Virus record (IMG/VR): IMGVR_UViG_3300024999_000030
Location: 1 to 64,000 of that record
Length of the DNA stretch: 64,000 nt
Direction: 5' to 3' (one strand)
The position numbers were made by a program, and so were the translations under genes. Below are positions 2,330 to 35,597 of this stretch, one piece after another. Positions within the stretch are counted from its first letter, which is position 1, and each line of letters opens with the position of its first letter. Under the pieces are notes generated by a model, which was not told where the DNA came from, searched no databases, and was given only the letters and a program-made list of their open reading frames with translations.

Positions 2330-3061
2330 ATGCCTAATGCGAACTTAAAAGAAAAGGTGACCGAACGTATCGCGGATACTTTACTTAACACTCCGTGGTG
2401 GACAGTATTCAAAGAAGAAAATTATAGACTGTCCTTAGCTAATAAGCTAATCAACGCTTACCTTATTAATAAAGGCAAGAACACACTTACGGAACCTGAA
2501 TTAAACGATTTACTTAAGCGTGTTGTTTCAGCGGTTACATACGCCGCAGCAAAACCCTCTGATTTATCTAGAGGTGATTTAGCTATGGCTCAAAAATTTA
2601 CACACGATGCATACTCAGCAATGATTACAGCACTAACCCCAGTAACACATATTCCAGAAAATATTCCAGAGACAATGTCTGTTCAACCTTATGCTGGAAA
2701 AAATGAATTTGATTTACCATTACCACGTATTGCATTGGGTAAAATGTTCAGGGGAACTGTGGCTGACATTTTTAGTATTCAATCTATTTCTAAAATGTTG
2801 GATGAGGCCCTTGGTGCACCAGATAAGGAAAATAGAAAAAACTTTTCGTTTACAGAAATAGAGGGACTTTTAAAGGCTTATTTTATAAATGGTGTTTCTG
2901 AAGCTTGGCGTAATGCTGTGAAGGAAACATATCATATTTCCGCTCCAACTATTTTTTCAATGATTAAAATCGCTGATGCTCTAGACGAAGCGGGTTATGA
3001 GCAAGAGGCTAATGAAATTGATTCCATTGTAAGGGGGCTCTTAGATGACCAGCAAAATTGA
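2330..3061 (+). CDS. Hypothetical head-region protein with C-terminal ADxLDxxG motif
   Basis: 243 aa ORF; IADALDEAGYEQEANEID near C-terminus. Confidence 0.7.
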   Translation: MPNANLKEKVTERIADTLLNTPWWTVFKEENYRLSLANKLINAYLINKGKNTLTEPELNDLLKRVVSAVTYAAAKPSDLSRGDLAMAQKFTHDAYSAMITALTPVTHIPENIPETMSVQPYAGKNEFDLPLPRIALGKMFRGTVADIFSIQSISKMLDEALGAPDKENRKNFSFTEIEGLLKAYFINGVSEAWRNAVKETYHISAPTIFSMIKIADALDEAGYEQEANEIDSIVRGLLDDQQN

Positions 3062-4925
3062 TTATTCTGGGGCGTTTGTCGCTCTTCACCGAATTGCAAC
3101 TGTACTAAAAGAGTACGACAAGAGTGTTGAGGCTGACGCTTTAAAGGCGGTTATGTGTAATGATATGGCCGCATTAGAGAAAACCAGTTTGTCTGGTGAA
3201 CAACTTTTGAATCTTCATAATGAGATTCAAGCTGCAATGGACGAAGAGAAAGCCCCCTCTGTAGTTCGCGCTGCAGTAACTGAAATTTTTAAAACCCCGC
3301 TTAAAGCCATGGGAGTGAAAATGTCTAATAAGAAAATAGTGAGTTCTAAGGTTAAGATAGCTGCTAAAGCGCCAGTCACCACTTATCTTAGATTGGAATC
3401 TGACCGCGCCTCTCGACCAAAAGAAATCACTCGTCCCTTGGTGTTGCGTAAGAATCTTAAAATTGACACCACTGGCTATAGTAACTTAGATCAGATTGGG
3501 AGTGGCGAAATACCCTCTATGGTTACAGATGCTTATGATAAAGCAGAGGAGAATTATAACTCTAATCCTAACTCTAATGTTAATAAGGGCCGATTTAAAG
3601 ATACCCAAGAGGCCCATGATAAATCTGGTGTGCTAATTGTTCCATCCTATATGAATTATGGTGTTATGTTTAGAGATGATGTATCTCATATGATTATGGA
3701 GCAAGTGGCTAATCGTGGAACTACGGGATTGTCCACTTATGTTGGTGGTGTTCCTTTAAATAATAATGATTTAAATACCATTGGTGATGTGGCCGTTCGC
3801 TTAGTTCTTAAAAATGAAACCAAACTTGCAAAGCGCGCCGCAGCAATTATTTATACTGAGTTGTTGAGACGAGCTGCGGGAAAACCAGAGGGACTTAATA
3901 AAGCCGCTTATGATAATACATCAATGGCATGGCGCTGGCCCATGGTTTCTAGAGAAGTGGTTTATCCTATTCGCCCAACATCTAATGCTATTCAGTATGC
4001 ACACCCAGATCAAGCCGTGAGTATTGACCCACGTTCTTTATTCGGTATTATAATGCGTATTGATATTAAAAATAAAGTAATGCAGAATGCAGCCACTAGT
4101 CGTCCTATCGGAAGATCAGCTGAAGATTTGAAAGTTCATTATCTTAAAATGTTAAATGCTGGCGAGTTTGCTGAAGCTTTGAAGTTTCGTAAATCAGCTG
4201 CTGATATTTATGATGTAAATTGTGGAGAGTATGACGATAAGATTGTTGAAAGGGCCCATAAAGAGCCTTACGTGAAAGTGGAAGATGGTATTTTCCCAAC
4301 AATCACCAAACAGCAGGATATAGATGAAGCAGCAGCTACAACTACTCCTACTGGAAAAGTAAGTGATGAACCTAAACACTTTGCTTTTATTGATTTGAAA
4401 GATCTAACGGATAAATTCATATCAGCTAAAAAAGAAGAAGATAAAAAAGATGAAAAAACTAAAGAAGAATCTGAACCAGTAGATTTATCTTTTGTTGTTC
4501 CCTCTCTTGAGGATGAGGGAGAGTATCCTTTTTCTCGGGACATTGAAACCAAGGACATGGAAGATGTTTTAAGTGGCCCTGAAGTAACAGAGATTGGAGA
4601 AGAGGTAGAGTCTCCTCTTGGGGAACAGATTCAGAATACTGGTATTAATTTTTCCATTAATCCAGATACTGGAATTGTAACACTTAACGTTAATATGACT
4701 GCTAATAAAACTTTTGATTCTACTGCAGAGGCTATGGACTGGGCAGTAAAATTAAGTGAGTTGCTTAATTCCAGAATGGCAGATATTAAAGCAGCTGGTT
4801 ATAAACTTCCTGCTATTATTAGAGCTGCACAGGTACATAATGAGTTTGTTAAGTTTTTAGCCTCTAGTGTTATTTTTTCTAGAAACATTAACACTCTACT
4901 TGATATGGTGGGTGATTTTGATTAA
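3045..4925 (+). CDS. Hypothetical 626 aa protein, probably virion/head associated
   Basis: Long ORF coupled to neighbours in the head operon. Confidence 0.7.
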   Translation: MTSKIDYSGAFVALHRIATVLKEYDKSVEADALKAVMCNDMAALEKTSLSGEQLLNLHNEIQAAMDEEKAPSVVRAAVTEIFKTPLKAMGVKMSNKKIVSSKVKIAAKAPVTTYLRLESDRASRPKEITRPLVLRKNLKIDTTGYSNLDQIGSGEIPSMVTDAYDKAEENYNSNPNSNVNKGRFKDTQEAHDKSGVLIVPSYMNYGVMFRDDVSHMIMEQVANRGTTGLSTYVGGVPLNNNDLNTIGDVAVRLVLKNETKLAKRAAAIIYTELLRRAAGKPEGLNKAAYDNTSMAWRWPMVSREVVYPIRPTSNAIQYAHPDQAVSIDPRSLFGIIMRIDIKNKVMQNAATSRPIGRSAEDLKVHYLKMLNAGEFAEALKFRKSAADIYDVNCGEYDDKIVERAHKEPYVKVEDGIFPTITKQQDIDEAAATTTPTGKVSDEPKHFAFIDLKDLTDKFISAKKEEDKKDEKTKEESEPVDLSFVVPSLEDEGEYPFSRDIETKDMEDVLSGPEVTEIGEEVESPLGEQIQNTGINFSINPDTGIVTLNVNMTANKTFDSTAEAMDWAVKLSELLNSRMADIKAAGYKLPAIIRAAQVHNEFVKFLASSVIFSRNINTLLDMVGDFD

Positions 4926-8582: not shown

Positions 8583-9716
8583 ATGGAGGGTGACCATAAG
8601 GTGAACGACGATTCGTCGCTAAAAAATAACTACTTCCCTGAAATTTCTATTGAAGACTGGAGCGATTGGAAGTGGCAATATCGTAATAGAATCAAGACAG
8701 TCTCAGGACTGTCTAAATTTTTACCTGTAGACTCTGAATTGTTTAAACGTAGCAACCATGAGCTTCACATGGCTATTACTCCTTATTACCTTAGTCTTAT
8801 TGATAAGAAAAATTATCACGATGATCCAATTTACAAACAGGCAGTACCATCATTAGAAGAATTTAATGATGCAGGGTTAATCGATCCTCTTCATGAATCT
8901 GAGCAGTCTCCAGTAGACGGCATCGTTCATCGCTATCCAGATCGTTGTTTGTTTATTAGTACATCTTGGTGTGCGATGTACTGTAGATTTTGTACGCGAA
9001 AAATTCAATGGGAACACGGCGAGATGCCTAAGTCTCGTCGTCAATTAGAGGCGATGCTGGACTACATTCGTAAGACACCAGCAATTAGAGATGTTATTCT
9101 ATCTGGTGGAGATCCATTATCTCTTCCAATGGATACCTTGGAATTTATTCTATCTTCTCTTCGGAGCATTTCTCATGTTGAGATTATTCGAATCGGAACG
9201 CGTTTTCCAGTAGTATTGCCCCAAAGAATAACAGAAGATTTAACAAACATATTAAAAAAATATAGACCATTATATATCAATACTCATTTTAATCATGTAA
9301 ATGAAATTACAATAGAATCTTCAGCTGCATGTGATAAATTACTTTGTGTTGGTATCCCCGTAAATAATCAATCTGTACTTTTACGTGGAGTTAATAATAC
9401 CACTCAGGACATGCTAAACCTTTGTCATGGTTTATTGAAAATTGGAGTTCGGCCCTATTATTTGTTTGCTTGTGATGCTGTCAAAGGGGCTGAGCATTTT
9501 AGAACTACAATAGAAACGGGTATAAATATTATTGCTGGTATGCGTGGTTTTACTTCTGGTTTAGCTATTCCTCAATTTGTAGTTGACACAGAGGGGGGTG
9601 GAAAGGTTCCAGTAAATCCACATTACGTTGCTCGTAATGAAAATAATGAAATTGTATTGTATAACTATGAAGGTAAAGCTTTTAAATATAAAAATCCAGA
9701 AAAAAACAATAATTGA
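8583..9716 (+). CDS. kamA: KamA-family radical SAM protein (lysine 2,3-aminomutase/EpmB-like)
   Basis: W.DW.WQ N-terminus, HRYPDR, CAMYCRFC (CxxxCxxC), SGGDPL, RIGTR, NQSVLLRGVN, GGGKVP. Confidence 0.9.
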   Translation: MEGDHKVNDDSSLKNNYFPEISIEDWSDWKWQYRNRIKTVSGLSKFLPVDSELFKRSNHELHMAITPYYLSLIDKKNYHDDPIYKQAVPSLEEFNDAGLIDPLHESEQSPVDGIVHRYPDRCLFISTSWCAMYCRFCTRKIQWEHGEMPKSRRQLEAMLDYIRKTPAIRDVILSGGDPLSLPMDTLEFILSSLRSISHVEIIRIGTRFPVVLPQRITEDLTNILKKYRPLYINTHFNHVNEITIESSAACDKLLCVGIPVNNQSVLLRGVNNTTQDMLNLCHGLLKIGVRPYYLFACDAVKGAEHFRTTIETGINIIAGMRGFTSGLAIPQFVVDTEGGGKVPVNPHYVARNENNEIVLYNYEGKAFKYKNPEKNNN

Positions 9717-10313: not shown

Positions 10314-10891
10314 TGTATGTAGAAATATCTCCTAGACAAACTGGTAAAACTACTAGACTTATAGCGGCTATTAAGGCTCATTTAGCAGCTCATCCGTCAA
10401 ATGAAGCTATACTGTATGCCGTTAATTATAATTATATTTATAATTCTATGCCTCTTGTGGATCAAGGCCGCATTAATCGTTTCAGTCGCTGTAGCTATGC
10501 CGGTCGCAATAAAATTAAACTATTTGTAGATGAATTCGATTACTTATTATCAATGGAAGATTTTAATGAAATTCGTTGTAGATATAATTTAAATAATTCA
10601 TATTGGAGCACAACACCAAGGTTTATAAGGAATTCAATTAAGAAAGACGATGATGTTTTATTATCTATCTTATTTCTTAATGGAGGAAAGTGGTTTAGTA
10701 TGAATAAGGCTAACGTTAGACATGTTTGGAGGAATCGTTTTTATCTTAAAACTATTTCAAAAGAAGTTATGAAAATAGAATATTTTGGTTACTGGTTTCC
10801 GCCGGGAATGCTTCCGGTGTTATCTAAAGATGTTTATAGTCCAGCCGGATTTATAGAACATTTTATTCCACCTAAATGGCTTGACTTTTGA
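10313..10891 (+). CDS. P-loop NTPase-like protein (terminase/helicase-like Walker motifs)
   Basis: SPRQTGKTT Walker A; LFVDEF Walker B-like. Confidence 0.55.
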   Translation: MYVEISPRQTGKTTRLIAAIKAHLAAHPSNEAILYAVNYNYIYNSMPLVDQGRINRFSRCSYAGRNKIKLFVDEFDYLLSMEDFNEIRCRYNLNNSYWSTTPRFIRNSIKKDDDVLLSILFLNGGKWFSMNKANVRHVWRNRFYLKTISKEVMKIEYFGYWFPPGMLPVLSKDVYSPAGFIEHFIPPKWLDF

Positions 10892-10909
10892 CTATTAATA
10901 TTTTATATT
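10881..10909 (+). promoter_or_regulatory. Promoter of tRNA operon 1
   Basis: TTGACT-N17-TATATT, with CTATTAAT inside the spacer. Confidence 0.85.
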
Positions 10910-10929
10910 ATTAATGAAAGAGAAATGAA

Positions 10930-10998
10930 ATGAATATAGTAAATAGTTCACTCCTGTTATCGTTGTCTAGTCTTCCTAGCGCCCGAGGGGTGTTCTAA
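10930..10998 (+). CDS. Attenuator leader peptide 1 (Leu/Ser-sensing) MNIVNSSLLLSLSSLPSARGVF
   Basis: 11 of codons 6-17 are Leu/Ser, using five different Leu and five different Ser codons; the 3' end is the antiterminator strand. Confidence 0.85.
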   Translation: MNIVNSSLLLSLSSLPSARGVF

Positions 10999-11023
10999 GT
11001 CTATCTCCCTTTAGACTTTTGAC

Positions 11024-11058
11024 AAGCCCCTCGGAAATCGGGGGGCTTTTGGTTTTTT
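11024..11058 (+). terminator. Attenuator terminator 1
   Basis: AAGCCCCTCGG-AAA-TCGGGGGGCTT plus U-tract; its 5' strand also pairs with CGAGGGG at 10984. Confidence 0.85.
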
Positions 11059-11060
11059 AT

Positions 11061-11147
11061 GCGGATATGGTGGAACTTGGTAGACACAGAAGTCTTAAAA
11101 ATTTCTGGCCCATGGCCGTCCCAGTTCAAATCTGGGTATCCGCACCA
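11061..11147 (+). tRNA. tRNA-Leu(TAA)
   Basis: Cloverleaf, loop CT-TAA-AA, long V-arm, encoded CCA. Confidence 0.92.
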
Positions 11148-11150
11148 AAT

Positions 11151-11237
11151 GCGGTGGTGATGTAATTGGTAGCCATGTCAGCCTTAGAAGCTGATGGAAG
11201 AAATTCCGTATCGGTTCGAGTCCGATTCACCGCACCA
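11151..11237 (+). tRNA. tRNA-Leu(TAG)
   Basis: TCAGC-CTTAGAA-GCTGA arm, long V-arm, CCA. Confidence 0.92.
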
Positions 11238-11280
11238 AAAAGGGGATACTGGACGAAGATTAAATATGGTAAATTATAAT

Positions 11281-11358
11281 GGGCCGGTGATGCAATTCGG
11301 TAGACATCAATCTCTCAAAAAGATTGTTTTAAGGTTTCGAACACCTTCCGGCCTACCA
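11281..11358 (+). tRNA. tRNA-Leu(CAA), short variable region
   Basis: CAATCT-CTCAAAA-AGATTG; only ~4 nt before T-stem; CCA. Confidence 0.85.
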
Positions 11359-11365
11359 AAATAAT

Positions 11366-11453
11366 GGAGGGTGGGGCCACTTGTCTAGTGGACACCGCCT
11401 TGAAAGCGGTTGAGACTTTAGGGTTTTCGGTTGAATTCCGACACCCTCCTCCA
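11366..11453 (+). tRNA. tRNA-Ser(TGA), 8/4 acceptor/T-stem type
   Basis: GGAGGGTG/CACCCTCC 8 bp, TCGG/CCGA 4 bp, 5 bp D-stem with 5 nt loop, U73. Confidence 0.8.
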
Positions 11454-11456
11454 AAT

Positions 11457-11544
11457 GGAAGATTGGCCGAGTGATTTAAGGCTCCGGTTTGCTAAACCGG
11501 CGAGTCGAAAGGCTCCAAAGGTTTGAATCCTTTATCTTCCGCCA
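11457..11544 (+). tRNA. tRNA-Ser(GCT), canonical 7/5
   Basis: CCGGT-TTGCTAA-ACCGG, long V-arm, G73-CCA. Confidence 0.92.
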
Positions 11545-11547
11545 AAC

Positions 11548-11635
11548 GGAGAGTGAATCGGTCGGGGACCGAACACGCTCGGAAAGCGTTGTGTATCCGC
11601 AAGGATATAGGAATCGTGCTCTTCGCTCTCCGCCA
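11548..11635 (+). tRNA. tRNA-Ser(GGA), 8/4 (or 9/3) type, C33
   Basis: GGAGAGTG(A)/(T)CGCTCTCC, long D-stem TCGGT/ACCGA, loop TC-GGA-AA, V-arm with GCAA loop. Confidence 0.78.
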
Positions 11636-11641
11636 ATTTAT

Positions 11642-11728
11642 GGGAAGTGATCTGAACCGTTGTTCAGCATCGTCTCGAAAACGAATGGGACCTTCGGGTT
11701 TAGGGTTGAACTCCTTCGCTTCCCGCCA
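11642..11728 (+). tRNA. tRNA-Ser(CGA), 8/4 (or 9/3) type
   Basis: GGGAAGTG(A)/(T)CGCTTCCC; 6 bp D-stem CTGAAC/GTTCAG with 4 nt loop; loop CT-CGA-AA. Confidence 0.8.
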
Positions 11729-14707: not shown

Positions 14708-14783
14708 GTCCAGTTAGCTCAATTGGCTAGAGCAGTATTCTCTAAAAACACTGACATCCGTTCGATCCGGATACTGGACACCA
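14708..14783 (+). tRNA. Amber suppressor tRNA (CTA)
   Basis: 76 nt cloverleaf GTCCAGT/ACTGGAC; loop CT-CTA-AA; one A.C mismatch in anticodon stem; TTCGATC T-loop; CCA. Confidence 0.85.
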
Positions 14784-15051: not shown

Positions 15052-15501
15052 ATGGAAATGCAGAAAAAGAAAGTTCATCGAATCCTTGCTCCCCGCCCTA
15101 AAGTTTATTTGGCGGGACCTATTAAGGATTGTACTGATGCAGAGGCAGGTGATTGGCGTAAAGAAGCTACGGAAAAACTAGCTGAAATTGGATATGACGT
15201 ATTAGATCCATTCAAGCGAGACTATCGTGGTGTCGAAGATAATCATTGGCAAGAGATTGTCGAGGGTGATAAACACGACATTGAAGCGGCAGATTATATA
15301 ATTGCTAATTGCCCAAAAGCCAGTGCAGGGACTAGTATGGAAATTTATCTATCTTGGGAAATGGGAAAGGCTCCAATTGTTATTGCTCCTAAACCTGTAA
15401 GCCCATGGGTTAGATATCATGCTGCGGACGTGGTTGATAGTTTAGATGAAGCTATTATGATGTTGAAAATTTTTGGGTCTCGAAAAATAGCAAACAAATA
15501 A
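15052..15501 (+). CDS. Nucleoside 2-deoxyribosyltransferase-like protein
   Basis: VYLAGPI...DWR...LDP...D..DI..AD.IIA.....SAGTSME. Confidence 0.8.
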   Translation: MEMQKKKVHRILAPRPKVYLAGPIKDCTDAEAGDWRKEATEKLAEIGYDVLDPFKRDYRGVEDNHWQEIVEGDKHDIEAADYIIANCPKASAGTSMEIYLSWEMGKAPIVIAPKPVSPWVRYHAADVVDSLDEAIMMLKIFGSRKIANK

Positions 15502-15567: not shown

Positions 15568-16173
15568 ATGAAGAAATTTATTTGCACAATGTTGGCAGCG
15601 GCTCTTGTGGGGCTCTCGGCCTTTGCGGCTGCACCTGAACGTAAGTATGAGCTAACTTTTGGGCCTGCTTATACTTGGTCTGAATCAGCTCATATGCAGA
15701 GTTTGAATGGTCTTTCGTCCGCAACTAATATTAAGCTTTCGTTTCAAGATGATATGGGTCTTTATGTCGGGTTTTTCTTGCCTATTAGCAAGAATTTAGG
15801 ATTTTATCCTGGCCTTACGGCAAATTGGGACGGAAAGTTTTGGAGAGATGGTCAGTCTTATAATCAAATTACCTTTAAGACTTATGCTCTTGATCTAGAC
15901 GCACGATACAATTTTAATTTTAACAGTGGCACTTTTTATTTGATGGGTGGACCTACTATCACTTTCCTTCCCGAAGGGCAGCGACTTTCCGCGAATGTGG
16001 GTGTTGGTCTTAACTTTAAGTTGTTTTCATCTGACGCGTTTCGTCTTACCTTTGAGGGTAAGTATCGCGTCAACCCTAGCACTTTTTCCTACACTGATGT
16101 TAAGGGTGGGGATTATGAGTCTGCTCGTCCTGAGACTTGGACGGCTTTTACTGGCTTGACTTTTAAGTTCTAA
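15568..16173 (+). CDS. Outer-membrane beta-barrel protein with signal peptide
   Basis: MKK + hydrophobic + AFA signal; alternating beta strands; C-terminal GLTFKF. Confidence 0.8.
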   Translation: MKKFICTMLAAALVGLSAFAAAPERKYELTFGPAYTWSESAHMQSLNGLSSATNIKLSFQDDMGLYVGFFLPISKNLGFYPGLTANWDGKFWRDGQSYNQITFKTYALDLDARYNFNFNSGTFYLMGGPTITFLPEGQRLSANVGVGLNFKLFSSDAFRLTFEGKYRVNPSTFSYTDVKGGDYESARPETWTAFTGLTFKF

Positions 16174-16184
16174 GGTTGTATATT
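16156..16184 (+). promoter_or_regulatory. Promoter of tRNA operon 2
   Basis: TTGACT-N17-TATATT overlapping the OMP gene end; TATTAAT at 16181. Confidence 0.85.
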
Positions 16185-16218
16185 AATATTTATTGTAATA
16201 AATAGAAAAGAGGAGAAA

Positions 16219-16308
16219 ATGCTTTCTACTTGGTCTCACATCGAATTTGCCGAACGCCATAACGTGATGTTTAATGATATCGCGGGCGTTGGGAGCATTT
16301 GTTTGTAA
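16219..16308 (+). CDS. Attenuator leader peptide 2 MLSTWSHIEFAERHNVMFNDIAGVGSICL
   Basis: AGGAG RBS; codons 5-22 contain all of W,H,I,E,F,A,N,V,M,D, matching the downstream tRNAs. Confidence 0.88.
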   Translation: MLSTWSHIEFAERHNVMFNDIAGVGSICL

Positions 16309-16332
16309 GGCCAAATTAAAAGGCGTGCAAAC

Positions 16333-16366
16333 AAAGGCTCCCGGGAAACTGGGAGCCTTTTACTTT
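16333..16366 (+). terminator. Attenuator terminator 2
   Basis: AAAGGCTCCCGG-GAAA-CTGGGAGCCTTT plus U-tract; alternative pairing with GGGAGCATTTGTTTG at 16291. Confidence 0.88.
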
Positions 16367-16373
16367 ATGTGTG

Positions 16374-16451
16374 GTGACGGAACGCGAAGCGGACGAGCGG
16401 ACTGTCTGTGAAACAGTTGATTAGAGGTTTCGAGGACCTTCCGTCACACCA
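16374..16451 (+). tRNA. tRNA-His(GTG), A73, possible 8/4 fold
   Basis: ACTGT-CTGTGAA-ACAGT; GTGACGGA/TCCGTCAC can form 8 bp with AGGT/ACCT T-stem. Confidence 0.82.
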
Positions 16452-16456
16452 AATAT

Positions 16457-16532
16457 GCGTCTGTGGTGTAAAGCCTAAGCATGATGGACTCCAAACCCAT
16501 CGGATTCAGCTGGCAACTGAGCGGACGTGCCA
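16457..16532 (+). tRNA. tRNA-Trp(CCA)
   Basis: Loop CT-CCA-AA; atypical T-loop CTGGCAA; G73-CCA. Confidence 0.8.
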
Positions 16533-16538
16533 AAATAT

Positions 16539-16620
16539 TCAGGAGAGCGCATATGGGTTGCGACCTGGCTGTTAACCAGATGCGAAAGCACACAGAGTTC
16601 GATTCTCTGCTCCTGAGCCA
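16539..16620 (+). tRNA. tRNA-Asn(GTT) with extended variable arm
   Basis: Loop CT-GTT-AA; V-region TGC-GAAA-GCA hairpin. Confidence 0.85.
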
Positions 16621-16627
16621 AATATAT

Positions 16628-16705
16628 GCCCTGGTAGCTCAGGTGGTTTAGAGCAATCGCTTGATAAGCGATAGGTCGTAAGTTCAAGTCTTACTCGGGG
16701 CACCA
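16628..16705 (+). tRNA. tRNA-Ile(GAT)
   Basis: Canonical cloverleaf, ATCGC-TTGATAA-GCGAT. Confidence 0.93.
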
Positions 16706-16708
16706 AAT

Positions 16709-16783
16709 GCCGCTTTAGCTCAGATGTAGAGCGCTGGCCTGAAGAGCCAGGCGTCGGAGGCTCAAGATCTCCAGGCGGCACCA
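16709..16783 (+). tRNA. tRNA-Phe(GAA)
   Basis: CTGGC-CTGAAGA-GCCAG. Confidence 0.9.
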
Positions 16784-16791
16784 AAAATTGA

Positions 16792-16885
16792 TGCGGGGTA
16801 GACTAGCGGTTCAGTCACTTGGTTCATACCCAAGCCGCACGGTAGCCAATCCGTCAGGTGGGTTCGACTCCCATCCCCGCCACCA
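16792..16885 (+). tRNA. tRNA-Met(CAT), initiator-like, with ~23 nt variable arm
   Basis: 1.72 mismatch (T.C), A11-U24 pair, loop TT-CAT-AC, ACGG/CCGT hairpin in V-region. Confidence 0.78.
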
Positions 16886-16894
16886 AAAATTTAT

Positions 16895-16971
16895 ACCTTG
16901 GTCACCAAGACGGTAAGGTGTAGTCCTCATAAGACTATTATACGGCAGTTCGAGTCTGCCCCAAGGTACCA
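16895..16971 (+). tRNA. tRNA(CAT): elongator Met or Ile2
   Basis: TAGTC-CTCATAA-GACTA; identity not resolvable by eye. Confidence 0.8.
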
Positions 16972-16973
16972 CT

Positions 16974-17050
16974 GCCGTTAAAGAGGAAGGACACGACTCA
17001 CCTGCCTGTCACGCAGGGGAAAGCCAGTGGAAGTCTGGTTGGCGGCGCCA
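16974..17050 (+). tRNA. tRNA-Asp(GTC)
   Basis: CCTGC-CTGTCAC-GCAGG, G73-CCA. Confidence 0.87.
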
Positions 17051-17055
17051 CTTAT

Positions 17056-17176
17056 GGGTCTATCATCTAATAGGGCCATCCGTGATACTAGAGGTATTTA
17101 GTACATGCAAGGGCGAAAATTAAGATGCTCCCGCAGAAAGGGAGTCATGTGGGTGCAAGTCCCGACGGATCCACCA
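17056..17176 (+). ncRNA. tRNA-like RNA with ~45 nt D-loop insertion and non-canonical anticodon loop
   Basis: D-stem ATCT/AGAT encloses a long hairpin; CTCCC-GCAGAAA-GGGAG; imperfect T/acceptor stems; ends ACCA. Confidence 0.6.
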
Positions 17177-17183
17177 AGTTTAT

Positions 17184-17257
17184 GGGGTAATCGTTTAGTG
17201 CTAGGACGAACGGCTCTCTACCGTTAAACCGGAGTTGAATTCTCCGTTACCCTACCA
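17184..17257 (+). tRNA. tRNA-Glu(CTC)
   Basis: AACGG-CTCTCTA-CCGTT, CCA. Confidence 0.82.
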
Positions 17258-17259
17258 AT

Positions 17260-17338
17260 GGCGTAATCGAATAATATGGACTAATTCGCCAGGCCTTCAC
17301 CCTGGATGATACGGGTTCGATCCCCGTTTACGCTACCA
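17260..17338 (+). tRNA. tRNA-Glu(TTC), C33
   Basis: CCAGG-CCTTCAC-CCTGG; canonical T-loop; CCA. Confidence 0.75.
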
Positions 17339-17339
17339 A

Positions 17340-17368
17340 TTGACAATTCCTATTAATGGAATTATATT
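17340..17368 (+). promoter_or_regulatory. Internal promoter for Val/Ala tRNAs
   Basis: TTGACA-N17-TATATT with CTATTAAT in the spacer. Confidence 0.8.
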
Positions 17369-17387
17369 TATTTCTTAAAAGATTTAT

Positions 17388-17463
17388 GCGCCCTTGGCCT
17401 AGTGGCGAAGGCATCTGGTCTACACCCAGAATATCGGGAGTTCGAGTCTCTCAGGGCGCACCA
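17388..17463 (+). tRNA. tRNA-Val(TAC), C33
   Basis: TCTGG-TCTACAC-CCAGA. Confidence 0.85.
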
Positions 17464-17468
17464 ATTTT

Positions 17469-17542
17469 GGGCCGTGGAGTGTGACGCGAGCACGTTTCCC
17501 TTGCACGGAAATAGAGGGGTTGAACTCCCACACGGTCCACCA
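17469..17542 (+). tRNA. tRNA-Ala(TGC)
   Basis: TTTCC-CTTGCAC-GGAAA; G3.U70 present. Confidence 0.9.
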
Positions 17543-17565
17543 AAATCCTTAATCATCTGATAATT

Positions 17566-17590
17566 GCGGGGCTTCGGCCCCGCTTTTATT
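17566..17590 (+). terminator. Terminator of tRNA operon 2
   Basis: GCGGGGC-TTCG-GCCCCGC-TTTT. Confidence 0.88.
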
Positions 17591-17662
17591 ATATTTAAAG
17601 TCTATTAATTATAGATCATCTTTCTGATGGTAGTTCTCATCTCCCCGAACATAGGAGTTTAA

Positions 17663-28441: not shown

Positions 28442-28481
28442 CTTGACTTTTTTAAATTATTGTGTTATATTTACAGTGAAT

Positions 28482-28553
28482 GAGAGATTGTGACAGAAAC
28501 GGTTACTTCCCTTTGAATGGATCTAATGTACCGTTTCGAATGCTTCTTCTCTT
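28482..28553 (+). ncRNA. Y RNA-like 1 (minimal)
   Basis: Starts just after promoter 28443-28471; shares GATTGTG..CGGTTACTTC and CCGT..CG..TTCTTC with the next two RNAs; ends pair. Confidence 0.7.
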
Positions 28554-28569
28554 GTTCCACAATTAAAAT

Positions 28570-28722
28570 GCTCCGGCGATTGTGCTAGAGTTCGGTTACT
28601 TCTCCTATTAAGAGAGCGGTCGTGGGTTCGAGTCCCACGGGGTCCATCAAAAACAACACGGGCCCCTAGCTCAGTTGGTAGAGCGCTAAAAAATACCGTA
28701 CTCGACTGTTTCTTCGCTGGGC
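28570..28722 (+). ncRNA. YrlA-type Y RNA with tRNA-mimic module
   Basis: T-arm GTGGG-TTCGAGT-CCCAC, closed acceptor-like helix GGGGTCC/GGGCCCC, then D-arm GCTC-AGTTGGTA-GAGC; upstream of Ro60. Confidence 0.85.
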
Positions 28723-28737
28723 TTAAAAATTAAGCTC

Positions 28738-28812
28738 GGCTCCGATTGTGCTTGAAAACGGTTACTTCTATCATAAGGAATAAACACCGTTTTCGTTAGT
28801 TTCTTCGGGGCC
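28738..28812 (+). ncRNA. Y RNA-like 3 (minimal)
   Basis: GGCTCCG/CGGGGCC terminal stem, same conserved motifs, GAAAACGGT/ACCGTTTTC helix. Confidence 0.72.
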
Positions 28813-28835
28813 TATTTTAATCTAAGGAGAGAAAG

Positions 28836-30221
28836 ATGAAAACTAATAAGAAAACTCATACTGTTGTTCATACCGCTGAAGGCGCCGTTGCAGCTAATAT
28901 TAACGCCAAGCAACAGCTCCGTAGGTCCGTTATGAGCTGCCTCCTTTGGGAGGATTCCTTCTATGAGGAAGGTGTGTCCATTGCTAAGCGTATTACCGAT
29001 TTAGTTAAAAAGGTTGATCCTGAAGATGTAGCTTCGCTCGCTATTGAAGCTCGTGAGGATTTCAAGCTTCGCCATGTTCCATTGCTCTTAGTTCGTGAGC
29101 TTGCTCGTGTGCATAAGGGAGATTCGCTTGTTTCTGATACTTTGGCACGAGTAATTCAGCGTCCAGATGAAATGGGTGAATTTGTAAGCCTTTATTGGAA
29201 AGAGGGAAGACAGCCTTTGTCTATGCAGGTTAGAAAGGGTATTGCTAAGGCCATGGGTAAGTTTAATGAATACTCCTTAGCTAAATATAATTCTTCTAAA
29301 TCTAATATTAAGCTTCGTGATATTCTCCGTTTGGTTCATCCTTCTCCAGTTGGTGATGAACAGACTCGTTTATGGAAGCGTATTTTAACCGATGAATTGG
29401 CTACTCCCGATACTTGGGAAGTTGCTTTGTCTGCTGGTAAGGATAAAAAGGAAACTTGGACTCGCCTTATTGATGAAAATAAGCTTGGTGGATTAGCTTT
29501 TTTACGTAATCTTCGTAACATGGAAACAGCTAAAGTAGATAAGGATATTGTACGTAGGGGCTTTGACCAAATTAATGTTTCTAGGGTTCTGCCTTTCCGT
29601 TTCCTTTCGGCTGCAAATGCTGCTCCTAAGTTTGAAGTTGAACTTGAGAAAGTAATGCTTAAGAGTTTTGAGGGTCGTGAAAAACTTCCTGGCAAGACAT
29701 TGTTTATTGTAGACGTGTCTGGAAGTATGGGCGGTTCGTTATCTCATAAGAGTGAAATGAATCGTCATGATGCAGCGGCAGCTCTTGCCATCGTTGCTCG
29801 TGAGATGTGTGAAGACCCAGTTATTTATGCTACAGCAGGAAACGATATGACTCGCATTCACAAAACTTCTATCGTTCCAGCTCGTCATGGGTTTGCCCTT
29901 AAGGATGCTATTCGTACTCAAGCTAACCAACTTGGTGGTGGAGGCATCTTTCTTAAGCAAGTTATGGACTATGTAAAGAACGCAGAGGGTGAGGCCGATA
30001 GAATTATCGTCATCACTGACGAGCAGGATTGCGACATCAAGCATAAGCCATCTACGGCTCAGCCATTCGGTAGGTATAATTATATGCTTAACGTTTCAGT
30101 AGAGAAGAACGGTATCGGCTACGGGCAGTGGACTCACATCGACGGTTTCTCTGAGGCTGTATTAGATTTCATTCTTCTTAGTGAGAAGGAAAACGAGCAG
30201 GAGATATGTCAGACTAACTAA
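28836..30221 (+). CDS. rsr: Ro60/Rsr TROVE-vWA RNA-binding protein
   Basis: L+R.VMSCLLWE..FYE, AREDFKLRHVPL, PDTWEV.LS, LRNLRNM, VDVSGSM MIDAS, ITDEQ. Confidence 0.92.
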   Translation: MKTNKKTHTVVHTAEGAVAANINAKQQLRRSVMSCLLWEDSFYEEGVSIAKRITDLVKKVDPEDVASLAIEAREDFKLRHVPLLLVRELARVHKGDSLVSDTLARVIQRPDEMGEFVSLYWKEGRQPLSMQVRKGIAKAMGKFNEYSLAKYNSSKSNIKLRDILRLVHPSPVGDEQTRLWKRILTDELATPDTWEVALSAGKDKKETWTRLIDENKLGGLAFLRNLRNMETAKVDKDIVRRGFDQINVSRVLPFRFLSAANAAPKFEVELEKVMLKSFEGREKLPGKTLFIVDVSGSMGGSLSHKSEMNRHDAAAALAIVAREMCEDPVIYATAGNDMTRIHKTSIVPARHGFALKDAIRTQANQLGGGGIFLKQVMDYVKNAEGEADRIIVITDEQDCDIKHKPSTAQPFGRYNYMLNVSVEKNGIGYGQWTHIDGFSEAVLDFILLSEKENEQEICQTN

Positions 30222-30280: not shown

Positions 30281-30374
30281 GCGGGAGTCGTCCAGCGGCC
30301 AGGACAGCGGTCTTATAAGCCGCCTCGCTCCAGATTAGAGCAAAACGGGGGTTCGAGTCCCTCCTCCCGCACCA
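30281..30374 (+). tRNA. tRNA-Ile(TAT) with ~23 nt variable arm
   Basis: GCGGT-CTTATAA-GCCGC; GCTC/GAGC hairpin in V-region; CCA. Confidence 0.82.
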
Positions 30375-30731: not shown

Positions 30732-30743
30732 ATTTAATTTGAC

Positions 30744-30772
30744 TTGACTTTCTTCTATTAATATATTATATT
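30744..30772 (+). promoter_or_regulatory. Promoter of tRNA operon 3
   Basis: TTGACT-N17-TATATT with CTATTAAT in the spacer. Confidence 0.85.
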
Positions 30773-30787
30773 ATTTGAGAGAGGACG

Positions 30788-30883
30788 ATGAATATGTTTA
30801 CCCAAGGAACCCCTAAACCACAGACAAGAACATACCAACGCTATTGCGGTAGGTATGTGCAAAATTTGGGGGCTTTGTCCTAA
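30788..30883 (+). CDS. Attenuator leader peptide 3 MNMFTQGTPKPQTRTYQRYCGRYVQNLGALS
   Basis: GAGG RBS; codons 5-23 consist only of T,Q,G,P,K,R,Y,C, matching the downstream tRNAs. Confidence 0.9.
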   Translation: MNMFTQGTPKPQTRTYQRYCGRYVQNLGALS

Positions 30884-30907
30884 GTATCTGTATCGCGGTT
30901 CAAAGAC

Positions 30908-30934
30908 AAGCCCCCGAGAAATCGGGGGCTTTTT
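30908..30934 (+). terminator. Attenuator terminator 3
   Basis: AAGCCCCCGA-GAAA-TCGGGGGCTT plus U-tract; alternative pairing GGGGGCTTTGTC (30868) with GACAAGCCCCC. Confidence 0.88.
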
Positions 30935-30948
30935 ATTTAAAGAAAAAC

Positions 30949-31038
30949 GGGTCCGTCACCTAGTGGCCGAGGGTTCCAGCCTTTTAAGCTGGCGAGGTTT
31001 TACCTCCACCGTTGGTTCAAATCCAACCGGTCCCACCA
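30949..31038 (+). tRNA. tRNA-Lys(TTT) with long variable arm
   Basis: CCAGC-CTTTTAA-GCTGG; GAGG/CCTC V-arm. Confidence 0.85.
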
Positions 31039-31049
31039 AATATAATTTT

Positions 31050-31130
31050 GCCTCCGTAGCTCAGTCGCGTTAAGTAGCATCCGGCTCTTACCCGGAAGGT
31101 CGCAGTCATCGCAAGCTGCCGAGGGCACCA
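31050..31130 (+). tRNA. tRNA-Lys(CTT)
   Basis: TCCGG-CTCTTAC-CCGGA; atypical T-loop. Confidence 0.8.
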
Positions 31131-31137
31131 AAAAAGT

Positions 31138-31215
31138 CTGGGTGTAGCTCAGTCTGGCCAGAGCATCGCGTTTGGGACGCGAGGGTCGGGGGTCCGAATC
31201 CCTCCACCCAGACCA
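31138..31215 (+). tRNA. tRNA-Pro(TGG)
   Basis: C1-G72, A73, TCGCG-TTTGGGA-CGCGA. Confidence 0.92.
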
Positions 31216-31226
31216 AAGGAGATAAA

Positions 31227-31925
31227 ATGCCAGTGTGCGTTCTTTGTCATGCGGAGTTTCCAAATAGGCAGCGAATAGACGATAAGATTAGAAATTTAAA
31301 AAATAGGAAGCTTTGTTTAAAATGCTCTCCGTTTGGAGAACACACTCAGGCTCATAATTTATTGCCCAGAAAGAGAAATTTTACAGACGATCAGTTTATG
31401 GAGGCGGTAAAAAATAATATCACTATTAAGGCTGTGTTGTTGCAGCTTAAATTAAGCCCGAGAGGAAATAATTATAAATTAGTACATAGGCTAGTGGAAC
31501 AATTTAATTTAGACGTATCTCATTGGAGTGTGGAGTTATCAAACTCTAATACTATGAAGAAGAAGTACTTAAGTATTAAAAGGGATGCGTCAAAAATCTT
31601 ATGTTTGGGGAGCACAACCGGTCGGCGAGCGGTTAAGGCGTGTCTCTTGAGAACTGGAGTCAAAAACGAATGTGCAATGTGCCATTTATCTGTGTGGCAA
31701 GGCCAGCCACTGTCTTTGCAGCTACACCATATTAATGGTCAATGGGATGACAACAGAGAAAATAATTTGCTGTTACTATGCCCAAATTGTCACTCTTTGA
31801 CAGATACGTTTTGTGGCAAGAAGAACGAAACAATTAATAAAGCTTGTGCTTGTGGTGCTCGCATAAAAAGTAAAAGTACACAGTGTGTGAAGTGTTACAA
31901 GGGGAGTCGTAAATTAGGTAAATAA
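31227..31925 (+). CDS. HNH homing endonuclease within tRNA operon 3
   Basis: CAMC....WQGQPLSLQLHHING...DNRENNL.LLCPNCHSLT. Confidence 0.88.
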   Translation: MPVCVLCHAEFPNRQRIDDKIRNLKNRKLCLKCSPFGEHTQAHNLLPRKRNFTDDQFMEAVKNNITIKAVLLQLKLSPRGNNYKLVHRLVEQFNLDVSHWSVELSNSNTMKKKYLSIKRDASKILCLGSTTGRRAVKACLLRTGVKNECAMCHLSVWQGQPLSLQLHHINGQWDDNRENNLLLLCPNCHSLTDTFCGKKNETINKACACGARIKSKSTQCVKCYKGSRKLGK

Positions 31926-31926
31926 T

Positions 31927-32002
31927 GTCCTTATAGCTCAATGTATAGAGCGTCTGGCTACGGACCAGAAGGTTGGGGGTTAGAGTCCTCCTAGGGACAC
32001 CA
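31927..32002 (+). tRNA. tRNA-Arg(ACG)
   Basis: TCTGG-CTACGGA-CCAGA; A20. Confidence 0.9.
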
Positions 32003-32005
32003 AAT

Positions 32006-32093
32006 GGTGGGGCGGCAGCGACGGTGAGCTGCAAGTGGCTGTAACCCACTCGCCTTAATGGCTTAGGGAGTTCGAATCTCTCCCCCACCACCA
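32006..32093 (+). tRNA. tRNA-Tyr(GTA)
   Basis: AGTGG-CTGTAAC-CCACT, long V-arm. Confidence 0.9.
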
Positions 32094-32102
32094 ATAATAT
32101 AC

Positions 32103-32188
32103 TGAGGAGTGGCCCAATTGGCAGGGCACGGGGCTTTGGACCCCGCGTGGTCTCCACATTGAAGGTTCGAGTCCTTCCTCCTCAGCCA
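32103..32188 (+). tRNA. tRNA-Gln(TTG) with long variable arm
   Basis: U1-A72, CGGGG-CTTTGGA-CCCCG, GTGG/CCAC V-arm. Confidence 0.85.
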
Positions 32189-32194
32189 AAATAT

Positions 32195-32280
32195 GCAGGA
32201 GTCCCCTAGTGCTCGATGGGACCGCACTTGTAATGCGGCGGCGAAAGCCCACGTGGGTTGAAATCCCACCTCCTGCTCCA
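32195..32280 (+). tRNA. tRNA-Thr(TGT) with extended variable arm
   Basis: CCGCA-CTTGTAA-TGCGG; GGC-GAAA-GCC. Confidence 0.85.
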
Positions 32281-32288
32281 GCGCTTAT

Positions 32289-32364
32289 GGATCAGTGGCG
32301 AAGTGTTAAACGCGACCGCCTGCAGAGCGGTTTATCGGGGGTTAAAATCCCTCCTGGTCCTCCA
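32289..32364 (+). tRNA. tRNA-Cys(GCA)
   Basis: ACCGC-CTGCAGA-GCGGT, U73. Confidence 0.9.
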
Positions 32365-32374
32365 AAAAATTTGA

Positions 32375-32462
32375 TGGGGAGTCGCGTAGCGGCCTAGCGC
32401 ATCGGTCTCTGGAACCGACAGAGGAAACTCTAACGAAGGTTCGAATCCTTCCTCCCCTGCCA
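32375..32462 (+). tRNA. tRNA-Gln(CTG) with long variable arm
   Basis: TCGGT-CTCTGGA-ACCGA; AGAG-GAAA-CTCT. Confidence 0.85.
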
Positions 32463-32464
32463 AT

Positions 32465-32538
32465 GAGGATTTGGTATAGTGCTCGTGCCCTCGGTTGCCT
32501 GCCGAGAGAGGCGGGTTGGATTCCCGCAATCCTCTCCA
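32465..32538 (+). tRNA. tRNA-Gly(GCC)
   Basis: CTCGG-TTGCCTG-CCGAG, U73. Confidence 0.85.
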
Positions 32539-32551
32539 ATTGGAGAATATA

Positions 32552-33223
32552 ATGATTAAAATAAAATTCACGTGTGAATATTGTGGAGTTGAAGGCGAAA
32601 GGCGAAAATCAGATTACAATCGAGCTAAACATCATTATTGCTCTCATAAGTGCAGTGTAAAGGCTTCGGATTCTATTGTCTACACAGAATGTGCTTTTTG
32701 TAGAAAGCAATTAATATTAAAAAGAAATAAGGTTAGGGCAAAAGCTAGAGTGTTTTGTTCTCATTCTTGTGCCTCTAAAATGATAAATGTGGAGCGAGGT
32801 GGAAAACTAAGGAAGGGAGAAATTAACTGTAGCTATTGTGGAAAAAAATTGGCCGGGGAGCAATTCAAATATTGCTCTATTTCTTGCCAACACCAACATA
32901 TCTATTCAAATTTTATTAAAGCCTGGCAAGATGGAATAGTTTCTGGTTCCACGGCAAATGGAGGTGTCGCCTCGACCATTAGAAAGTATTTACATGATAA
33001 ATATGGATGTAGGTGCGCCATATGTGGATGGAATAAAATTAATCCACATACACATAAAATCCCACTGCAAGTCCATCATATTGATGGAAATTCTCATAAT
33101 GCCAGTGAAGATAATCTTATTTTGATTTGTCCGAATTGTCACAGTTTAACTGATAAATTTGGCGCCAGAAACAAGGGGAACGGTAGAGACTCAAGAAGAA
33201 TACGAAGAGCTAATCAAAAATAA
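32552..33223 (+). CDS. HNH homing endonuclease with Zn-ribbon repeats, within tRNA operon 3
   Basis: GGAG RBS; repeated CxxC...YCS..C; CAICGW...LQVHHIDGN..NA..DNL.LICPNCHSLT. Confidence 0.88.
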   Translation: MIKIKFTCEYCGVEGERRKSDYNRAKHHYCSHKCSVKASDSIVYTECAFCRKQLILKRNKVRAKARVFCSHSCASKMINVERGGKLRKGEINCSYCGKKLAGEQFKYCSISCQHQHIYSNFIKAWQDGIVSGSTANGGVASTIRKYLHDKYGCRCAICGWNKINPHTHKIPLQVHHIDGNSHNASEDNLILICPNCHSLTDKFGARNKGNGRDSRRIRRANQK

Positions 33224-33297
33224 GCTTCCATAGTGTAGCACCAACACGACAGTCTTCCAAACTGTAATCGCGGGTGGGACTCCCGCTGGAAGCTCCA
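33224..33297 (+). tRNA. tRNA-Gly(TCC)
   Basis: ACAGT-CTTCCAA-ACTGT, U73. Confidence 0.88.
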
Positions 33298-33300
33298 AAT

Positions 33301-33379
33301 GTCCTCATGGCGCAAATGTATAGCGCGAGAGTTTCTCCTAAACTCTAGGCTGGGGGTTAGAGTCCCTCTGAGGACACCA
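33301..33379 (+). tRNA. tRNA-Arg(CCT)-like with 9 nt anticodon loop
   Basis: Body resembles Arg(ACG) at 31927 (A20); AGAGT-TTCTCCTAA-ACTCT. Confidence 0.72.
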
Positions 33380-33382
33380 AAT

Positions 33383-33465
33383 GTCAGTGTAGACGAGGTG
33401 GTCTTCTAAACCACTATTCGTAATTGGATCTGAAAATGTGGGTTCAAGTCCCACCGCTGACACCA
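33383..33465 (+). tRNA. tRNA-Arg(TCT) with rearranged D-domain
   Basis: Intact acceptor, anticodon (GTGGT-CTTCTAA-ACCAC) and T arms; only 8 nt before the anticodon stem; D-loop-like AATTGGAT lies 3' of it. Confidence 0.75.
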
Positions 33466-33472
33466 AATTTTT

Positions 33473-33549
33473 GCAGGCTTCGTATAGTCGTACTAGTACG
33501 CTAGTTTCGTAAACTAGAAACGGTGGATAATAGCCGCCAGCCTGCTCCA
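33473..33549 (+). tRNA. tRNA-Thr(CGT)
   Basis: CTAGT-TTCGTAA-ACTAG; atypical T-loop ATAATAG. Confidence 0.8.
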
Positions 33550-33672: not shown

Positions 33673-33945
33673 ATGACCTGGAACTATAGAGTTTTTAAAA
33701 AAAATTCAGTTAGCCCATCAGGCGAAAAGTCTTTTTATTATGAAATTCATGAAGTGTATTATAAAAAACACATAGACGACATTCCTAGTTTTGACGATAT
33801 TGATTATATTTCAGTAGATAGTATATCCCCTCAAGGTGAAACAGAAGAAGAATTACGTTTGGACTTAGATATAATGCAAAAAGCATTTAATTTACCTACA
33901 GTAGATTTTGATGAATTATATAAAAATAAAGGATGGGAAAAATGA
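33673..33945 (+). CDS. Small conserved phage protein
   Basis: GGAGG RBS; MTWNYRV...IHEVYY motif; promoter at 33628. Confidence 0.7.
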   Translation: MTWNYRVFKKNSVSPSGEKSFYYEIHEVYYKKHIDDIPSFDDIDYISVDSISPQGETEEELRLDLDIMQKAFNLPTVDFDELYKNKGWEK

Positions 33946-35585
33946 AAGATAAAGGTTCACAATTAGCAAAAATGCTAGAGGACTTGGAGATGGCAGAGGA
34001 AGCTGAAGCTAACGACGAGTCTTCATATCCTGCTATAGCATCCAATCCAAAATCTAGACCAGCAGCACCCGATATGGCAACCTCGACTCTTCAACGTGGA
34101 ACAGTAACAAACTCTAACAATAAACATATCGCTATGGTTGATTGGATTCCAACTGTACTAGGTATTACCAGAGAAGAGCAGTTTCATAGTTATCTAAACG
34201 ATATTAATGATACTACTGATGTTTCTAATTTTACGAGTATTGATTCTCGTATTGCCTTTTGGTATACTTTATTGACCGCTAATAGATTGAAATTAGTTTC
34301 TTTTGAAACTATTAAAGATGGTAATAAAATTATCTTGAGATATAAAATCAATACCAGTGATTTTGATGATGCATGTGGCTTTTCCGACATCACAATTGAT
34401 GTATATTCTACTAATATTACTACCACTGCTAATATTAGTAACTTTATTTTAGATGAAAATGATGAAGATGATAAAAAATTAGTATTGAATAAAGTGGCCA
34501 TTAATAGTTCTGGAGTGGATGACTGTTCCGCTATCGACTTGGGCATGGCTAAAATTACTACATCTAAGGGTGATGTAGTTTATATGTGTCGTCACGTTGC
34601 TCGGGCTATGGATAGAGCAGTGTCTACTGATTGTTTTTGGTTTGAAGACCTTGAAATTGTTCGCAATGTGGGAGATATTATTTGCGGACTTTATAAGGCA
34701 TGTAGAAATAAAGAACGCACTGTCTATATTGTTGAAGGCGAAAATGAAGTTGTGCGAGACCAAGAAGGGTTTTTTATGCGAAATATTTACAAAGACATTG
34801 TGAATGATATTAAAACATTTTTGGATTCCAAATCTTTATTTAGAGAGGCGGGTATTGCTTATCGTCGTGGTTATTTAATGTATGGTCCTCCTGGTAATGG
34901 TAAAAGTCAATTAGCAAGATATCTTTTTAATGAATTTAAGGATTTTAATTTGTATGCGTATTATCATACTGAGCGTCGTAGGGGTGGATCGGTAGACGAA
35001 CGTCTTGAGAGAACTTTTGCCCTGGCAAGAGACAACGCTCCTAGCTTTTTACTTTTAGAGGATTTGGATCGTATCGTTAGTCATGGATCTGCGTCTAAAG
35101 AAGTTATTACTATTGATAGATTGTTTAATATGATGGATGGTGTTTGTTCTCCCGAAGGAATTGTTTTGTTAGCTACCTGCAACCACCCAGAAAATCTTGA
35201 TATGGCTTTACTTGGTCGTCCAGGAAGATTTGACAGGGTAATTGAAGTCGGACATCCAGATAGGGCAGAACGAGAATCTCTTATCGGATATTTATGTTCT
35301 TGTGGTGAAAAAAGTAAACTTAATGCTAAAGAAATTAAAGCTGTAGCTCAATTAGCAGATTCCACTGAAAGCTTGAGCATGGCTTATATTAAAGAATTGT
35401 ATTCTAGAGCTTTTCTTAAACAACTTAATGCGGGTAATAGAAAACTTCCTATTAGTCCTTTTGTTCTTTTGGATTTAGTCCATGAAGTTGTTGATGAAAG
35501 CAGAAATGTAGATGTAATTGCTCGCCGCACGGGATTTCGTACTAATTATGAAAACTCTGCTAGGGGCGAGGATCATACGTCGTAA
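33942..35585 (+). CDS. AAA+ ATPase (BCS1/FtsH-like ATPase domain)
   Basis: RRGYLMYGPPGNGKS, LLLEDLD, LATCNHPENLDMALLGRPGRFDR. Confidence 0.9.
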   Translation: MKDKGSQLAKMLEDLEMAEEAEANDESSYPAIASNPKSRPAAPDMATSTLQRGTVTNSNNKHIAMVDWIPTVLGITREEQFHSYLNDINDTTDVSNFTSIDSRIAFWYTLLTANRLKLVSFETIKDGNKIILRYKINTSDFDDACGFSDITIDVYSTNITTTANISNFILDENDEDDKKLVLNKVAINSSGVDDCSAIDLGMAKITTSKGDVVYMCRHVARAMDRAVSTDCFWFEDLEIVRNVGDIICGLYKACRNKERTVYIVEGENEVVRDQEGFFMRNIYKDIVNDIKTFLDSKSLFREAGIAYRRGYLMYGPPGNGKSQLARYLFNEFKDFNLYAYYHTERRRGGSVDERLERTFALARDNAPSFLLLEDLDRIVSHGSASKEVITIDRLFNMMDGVCSPEGIVLLATCNHPENLDMALLGRPGRFDRVIEVGHPDRAERESLIGYLCSCGEKSKLNAKEIKAVAQLADSTESLSMAYIKELYSRAFLKQLNAGNRKLPISPFVLLDLVHEVVDESRNVDVIARRTGFRTNYENSARGEDHTS

Positions 35586-35597
35586 TGAGGAAAGATA

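Follow-up and report, generated by a model that had tools for sequence, protein, structure and literature searches.

A putative leader-peptide attenuator upstream of the tRNA genes of a large environmental phage

Organization of the tRNA region

The window analysed here is the first 64 kb of a 332.7-kb environmental viral contig, IMGVR_UViG_3300024999_000030. It carries more than 30 tRNA genes on the + strand, along with 12 exact copies, all on the + strand and lying between 8504 and 33656, of the motif TTGAC[T/A]-N17-TATATT, most of them followed by TTTT after the -35 box; this is a phage-specific promoter consensus shared with the relatives described below. The three tRNA arrays are each preceded by a copy of this promoter, a small ORF and an intrinsic terminator, as follows.

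10881-11048 (+), unit 1: promoter 10881-10909, 22-codon leader ORF 10930-10998 and terminator 11024-11048
11061-11728 (+), tRNA array 1: Leu-TAA, Leu-TAG, Leu-CAA, Ser-TGA, Ser-GCT, Ser-GGA, Ser-CGA
16156-16184 (+), promoter of unit 2 (TTGACT-N17-TATATT), conserved in relatives
16210-16215 (+), Shine-Dalgarno sequence GAGGAG, 3 nt before the ATG
16219-16308 (+), leader ORF of unit 2, 29 codons plus TAA
16231-16284 (+), regulatory codons 5-22, whose 5' part also forms region 1, which pairs with region 2
16289-16307 (+), region 2, the 5' strand of the predicted antiterminator, covering the last codons and the stop
16326-16344 (+), region 3, the partner of region 2, overlapping the terminator 5' arm (16333-16344)
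16333-16371 (+), intrinsic terminator, a 12-bp hairpin at 16333-16360 plus a U-rich tail
16374-17542 (+), tRNA array 2: His, Trp, Asn, Ile, Phe, Met, Met, Asp, a tRNA-like element, Glu-CTC, Glu-TTC, an internal promoter at 17340-17368, Val, Ala
17566-17583 (+), terminator closing array 2
30739-30931 (+), unit 3: promoter 30739-30767, 31-codon leader ORF 30788-30883 and terminator 30908-30931
30949-33549 (+), tRNA array 3: Lys x2, Pro, Arg, Tyr, Gln, Thr, Cys, Gln, Gly, Gly, an Arg-CCT-like tRNA, Arg-TCT, Thr, interrupted by two HNH-type ORFs

Using ARAGORN at default settings, the Asn, Ile, Phe, both Met, both Glu and the Val tRNAs of array 2 were identified, while relaxed settings added His (16374-16451), Asp (16974-17050) and Ala (17469-17542). 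The Trp tRNA at 16457-16532 was assigned by hand from its CCA anticodon loop, acceptor stem and CCA end, and is homologous to a Trp tRNA that both ARAGORN and Rfam call in relatives. A 121-nt tRNA-like element of unknown identity at 17056-17176 has an acceptor stem, a T arm and a CCA end, but a long hairpin replaces the 7-nt anticodon loop, and neither ARAGORN nor Rfam calls it; a comparable element lies at about 2946-3040 of the relative labelled L028. The internal promoter before Val and Ala means that these two tRNAs can be made independently of the upstream terminator; in L028 (3190-3992) protein-coding ORFs are inserted before Val and before Ala. The last two Ser tRNAs of array 1 were read by eye and are supported by ARAGORN calls in relative L017. 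The HNH-type ORFs of array 3 (31227-31925 and 32495-33223) are absent from the homologous array of relative L013 and so look like mobile insertions. The tRNA at 33301-33379 has a 9-nt anticodon loop, where its L013 homolog (4076-4151) has a normal 7-nt loop with an Arg-CCT anticodon, so the window copy carries a 2-nt insertion in the loop.

Other RNA- and translation-related genes in the window (8583-9716, 15052-15501, 33933-37157) include those for a radical-SAM lysine-2,3-aminomutase-like (EpmB-like) protein and a nucleoside 2-deoxyribosyltransferase, along with an AAA ATPase and an RNase Y-like protein with KH and HD domains. A phage Ro60/TROVE gene (28836-30221) is preceded by a promoter and three tandem Y-RNA-like modules (28443-30221 overall), with a sub-threshold hit to Rfam YrlA at 28592-28708 (41 bits, E 5e-7); the same layout is seen in L013 (467-2094).

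Codon content of the leaders

The initial annotation of unit 2, made from the sequence alone, described a leader ORF polling ten amino acids (W, H, I, E, F, A, N, V, M, D), with only S6 and R13 of codons 5-22 falling outside the set served by the downstream tRNAs, and with 16291-16305 pairing with 16328-16342, which overlaps the terminator 5' arm. Its coordinates, peptide, tRNA set and pairing are all confirmed here, though the 3-nt gap between the GAGGAG and the ATG is rather short. The ten amino acids make up 46.5% of this genome's proteins; 16 of the 18 residues in codons 5-22 belong to the set and, for codons 2-22, 16 of 21 residues are in the set and all ten types occur, for a joint P of 9e-5 under the genome's own amino-acid composition. 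Of the 12 array anticodons, 11 have a cognate codon in the leader; the exception, Glu-CTC, has its GAG codon in the relatives' leaders.

On its own, unit 2 is the statistically weakest of the three, and the case rests on the three sister units and their relatives, not on this unit alone. The core of the unit 1 leader, which precedes the Leu x3/Ser x4 array, reads S S L L L S L S S L P S and uses five different Leu and five different Ser codons, while the unit 3 leader has 19 consecutive codons drawn only from T, Q, G, P, K, R, Y and C, the eight amino acids of its array. In-set residues are 11/16, 16/21 and 19/22 for units 1, 2 and 3, as compared with at most 4/16, 3/21 and 3/22 for the wrong arrays, with P = 2e-6, 9e-5 and below 3e-7, and each leader is the top scorer for its own array among the 442 small ATG ORFs of the window. 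Together the three leaders partition all 20 amino acids as the arrays do, and 7/7, 11/12 and 12/14 array anticodons, or 30 of 33 anticodon species in all, have a cognate codon in their own leader. (Only standard-wobble and family-box figures are used, since four-way wobble counts include spurious split-box cases.)

Two other tRNAs lack such a unit: tRNA-Ile at 30281 is preceded by a plain hairpin, and the amber-suppressor-type tRNA at 14708-14783 (anticodon CTA, labelled "Pyl" by ARAGORN, and found also at L028:950-1024), co-transcribed after a small gene, by none; neither has a leader ORF. These cases, the general frequency of terminators after upstream genes, and the presence of the terminator in every equilibrium fold (below) would fit a constitutive, leaky terminator or insulator, or a 5' processing structure of the tRNA precursor, that sets a fixed tRNA level while the small ORF has no regulatory role. 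This is very unlikely, however, given the codon match occurring three times over, the placement of the complementarity exactly at the ORF end in all three units, and the conservation, with compensatory changes, described below.

Predicted alternative RNA structures

In each unit, the last five or six codons plus the stop are complementary to the terminator's 5' arm and the bases just upstream of it. In unit 2, 16291-16305 pairs with 16328-16342 at 14 of 15 positions, with one A/G mismatch, and the helix extends to 16289-16307/16326-16344. In isolation, this antiterminator is more stable than the terminator in all seven units examined, with values of -28.9 against -22.2 kcal/mol for unit 2. The complementarity is matched or beaten by 0, 7 and 1 of 2000 dinucleotide shuffles of the ORF for units 1, 2 and 3, and it always ends at the stop codon. 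A further helix between regions 1 and 2 appears in the predicted minimum-energy fold (z = -6.3).

Folding at full-length equilibrium with a masked ribosome footprint did not reproduce a switch for units 2 and 3, since the terminator was predicted to form whatever the ribosome position; the switch must therefore be kinetic, as in classical attenuators, a step that is inferred. A nascent-transcript model was used instead, with the RNA truncated before the terminator 3' arm and a 30-nt ribosome mask. Here the 5' arm is sequestered (P 0.8-0.98) unless the A site of the modelled ribosome has passed codon about 15, 21 or 23 (units 1, 2 and 3), which is about where the in-set codons end. Without any ribosome the truncated RNA also forms the antiterminator, so that untranslated transcripts might read through unless the conserved 1:2 helix forms first.

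Conservation in related phages

Three further lineages were found by looking up neighboring proteins and with degenerate DNA patterns: B (L017, L018, L022, and probably L013, L014 and L027), C (L019) and D (L028), that of the window being A. The flanking 201-aa protein is only 56-61% identical (also given as 56-57%), yet the leader DNA is 85-90% identical. The Shine-Dalgarno sequence is conserved in lineages A, B and C, while lineage D has GAAGGGG, and all four lineages keep a 29-codon ORF with the same start and stop positions. The hairpin is present in all relatives. The antiterminator keeps 16/17, 16/17, 16/17 and 15/17 pairs in the four lineages, with G-C to A-U and A-U to G-C double changes. 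For at least one of these, U16339, the same region-3 nucleotide also co-varies with its terminator partner, and thus changes in step with both of its alternative partners, which is the signature of a switch; for the second, the terminator side is misaligned by an indel and was read by eye. The 1:2 helix keeps 40/41 pairs in relatives and is contained in the RNAalifold consensus.

The 3' third of the ORF changes amino acids freely while keeping pairs, whereas changes within the regulatory codons are mostly from one in-set residue to another (A/V swaps, N to H, D to N), with one in-set to out-of-set change (H7 to Tyr). Array 2 of lineage B, complete on L022, has no tRNA-Asp, and its leader has no Asp codon, while lineages A, C and D have both. 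Units 1 and 3 are conserved in lineage B with synonymous changes and, in unit 1, Pro16 becomes Leu, giving 12/12 Leu/Ser. The correspondence is not perfect: S6 and R13 are conserved everywhere and a Tyr codon is found in all three relatives, and in L019, a partial counter-example, the array has lost Asn, Phe and Ile and its Met is truncated, though the leader still carries those codons. The L019 leader also ends in TAG (3003-3005) instead of TAA, where suppression would carry ribosomes through the terminator. One or two structured RNAs of about 200 nt, with no Rfam match, lie between the internal promoter and tRNA-Val in lineages B and C (L022:470-840, minus strand; L019:3665-3968) and are absent from the window.

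The first six codons (MLSTWS) are identical even at synonymous sites in three of the four lineages, lineage D differing from codon 5 on. One possibility is that the leader acts through its peptide, as a nascent arrest peptide or a small protein, or else through direct tRNA-RNA contacts in the manner of a T-box, a class that controls translation-related genes through a choice between terminator and antiterminator. This is very doubtful: ten of the 12 codon differences between lineages A and B change the amino acid, the conserved 5' codons are explained by their pairing in the 1:2 helix, and no T-box (RF00230) or other Rfam family matches at the gathering threshold or at E up to 1 over 16150-17650, where only tRNAs and noise hits such as BjrC68 and ctRNA_p42d were seen.

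Further searches for relatives added nothing new. Pattern scans of IMG/VR and JGI mostly returned the same phage from other samples, one terminator-pattern hit (L007) was a chance match, and GTDB genomes gave no match. GenBank phages show no DNA relatives beyond tRNA fragments, and the nearest cultured TROVE-carrying phages (Brevundimonas and Caulobacter jumbo phages, 49% identity) are not syntenic. A more distant huge phage with 48 tRNAs (L025) has one mixed array covering 19 amino acids, only Phe being absent, so the codon-match test is uninformative there; only four closely related lineages are known.

A probable attenuation mechanism

The arrangement of promoter, Shine-Dalgarno sequence and ORF, antiterminator, terminator and tRNA, with no room for another promoter before the first tRNA, is probably that of a ribosome-mediated transcription attenuator gating a phage tRNA operon, though there are no expression data of any kind, and translation of the ORF, stalling, kinetic competition between the helices and the physiological trigger are all inferred. 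Transcription would start around 16192. A ribosome running to the stop codon would cover region 2, letting the terminator form and ending transcription 13 nt before the first tRNA, while one stalled at any of codons 5 to about 20, for want of the matching aminoacyl-tRNA, would leave region 2 free to pair with the terminator's 5' arm as it emerges, so that RNA polymerase reads into the His-Trp-Asn-Ile-Phe-Met-Met-Asp-Glu-Glu-Val-Ala array. The polled codons are those read by the tRNAs being switched on, and the circuit would therefore be a negative feedback on decoding supply, with phage tRNAs made on demand and shut off when they suffice; units 1 and 3 would do the same for the other two arrays. 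The initial interpretation as a multivalent attenuator is supported, with the refinement that what is polled is tRNA supply or charging rather than amino-acid pools feeding a biosynthetic operon. Each of the ten amino acids has only one or two codons, where classical attenuators use tandem runs; sensitivity per codon may be low, and the Shine-Dalgarno spacing is only 3-4 nt.

It is possible, though unlikely, that the same attenuator instead responds to amino-acid starvation or overall translation capacity, the phage raising all tRNA output whenever translation slows. A stalled ribosome cannot tell a missing tRNA from an uncharged one and, since the modelled nascent RNA adopts the antiterminator with no ribosome at all, any loss of translation would give read-through. 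This does not explain, however, why each leader lists the amino acids, and 30 of 33 anticodon species, of its own array and avoids those of the other two, nor why Asp disappears from leader and array together, and making more tRNA does not relieve amino-acid starvation.

Relationship to known systems

The leader-peptide attenuators of enterobacterial amino-acid operons (trpL, hisL, leuL, pheL, thrL, ilvL/ivbL), among which ilvGMEDA (Leu, Val, Ile) and thr (Thr, Ile) are the multivalent cases, likewise have a short ORF with a Shine-Dalgarno sequence between the promoter and the regulated genes, 1:2, 2:3 and 3:4 pairings, regulatory codons placed where a stalled ribosome frees region 2, and about 60-70 nt between the stop codon and the terminator end. 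Here, however, the regulated genes are tRNAs rather than biosynthetic enzymes, the leader lists ten different amino acids once or twice each rather than runs of one to three, synonymous codons are varied so that nearly every isoacceptor of the array is addressed, and the element is phage-encoded, in three copies that together cover all 20 amino acids. The pheST (pheM leader) attenuator of E. coli also applies attenuation to a component of the translation apparatus, with the polled codons corresponding to the product's substrate, but it uses a run of a single amino acid (Phe), its product is a protein enzyme, an aminoacyl-tRNA synthetase, and it is chromosomal. T-box riboswitches sense tRNA status and choose between antiterminator and terminator upstream of translation-related genes, but each binds one uncharged tRNA directly, through a specifier codon and the T-box motif, and needs no ORF, while the ORF seen here is conserved.

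Other large lytic-type phages carry arrays of tRNA genes with an encoded CCA end. Among open-access papers, no description was found of a leader-peptide attenuator before tRNA genes or of demand-sensing control of phage tRNA transcription, which is absence of evidence only, and word searches of PMC10264068 and PMC13015707 found no mention of attenuation, leaders or terminators.

Biological implications

Somewhat more likely than not, a clade of huge phages controls its complete, 20-amino-acid tRNA complement with three such codon-matched attenuators, each a closed-loop sensor that transcribes an array only when ribosomes stall on the codons that array decodes, and acting as an OR gate over up to ten amino acids and about a dozen isoacceptors. 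This would be the first attenuator known to regulate tRNA genes, extending leader-peptide attenuation from amino-acid operons to tRNA genes and from 1-3 to 8-10 polled amino acids, and the first evidence that phages measure host decoding capacity, for example after host tRNA decay or cleavage by anticodon-nuclease defences, before deploying their own tRNAs. The parts are sigma-70-like and Shine-Dalgarno-dependent, and the leaders could serve as compact multiplex reporters of codon-specific decoding stress.

Why phages carry tRNAs is still debated, the proposals being codon compensation, replacement of degraded host tRNAs, and escape from tRNA-cleaving immunity (PMC10264068, PMC11464382, PMC11555353). 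The trigger here could be decay of host tRNA, tRNA-cleaving defences, codon mismatch or starvation. A demand-sensing switch in front of the arrays would show that the phage treats its tRNAs as a conditional response to decoding failure, and would give a direct handle to find out which failure.
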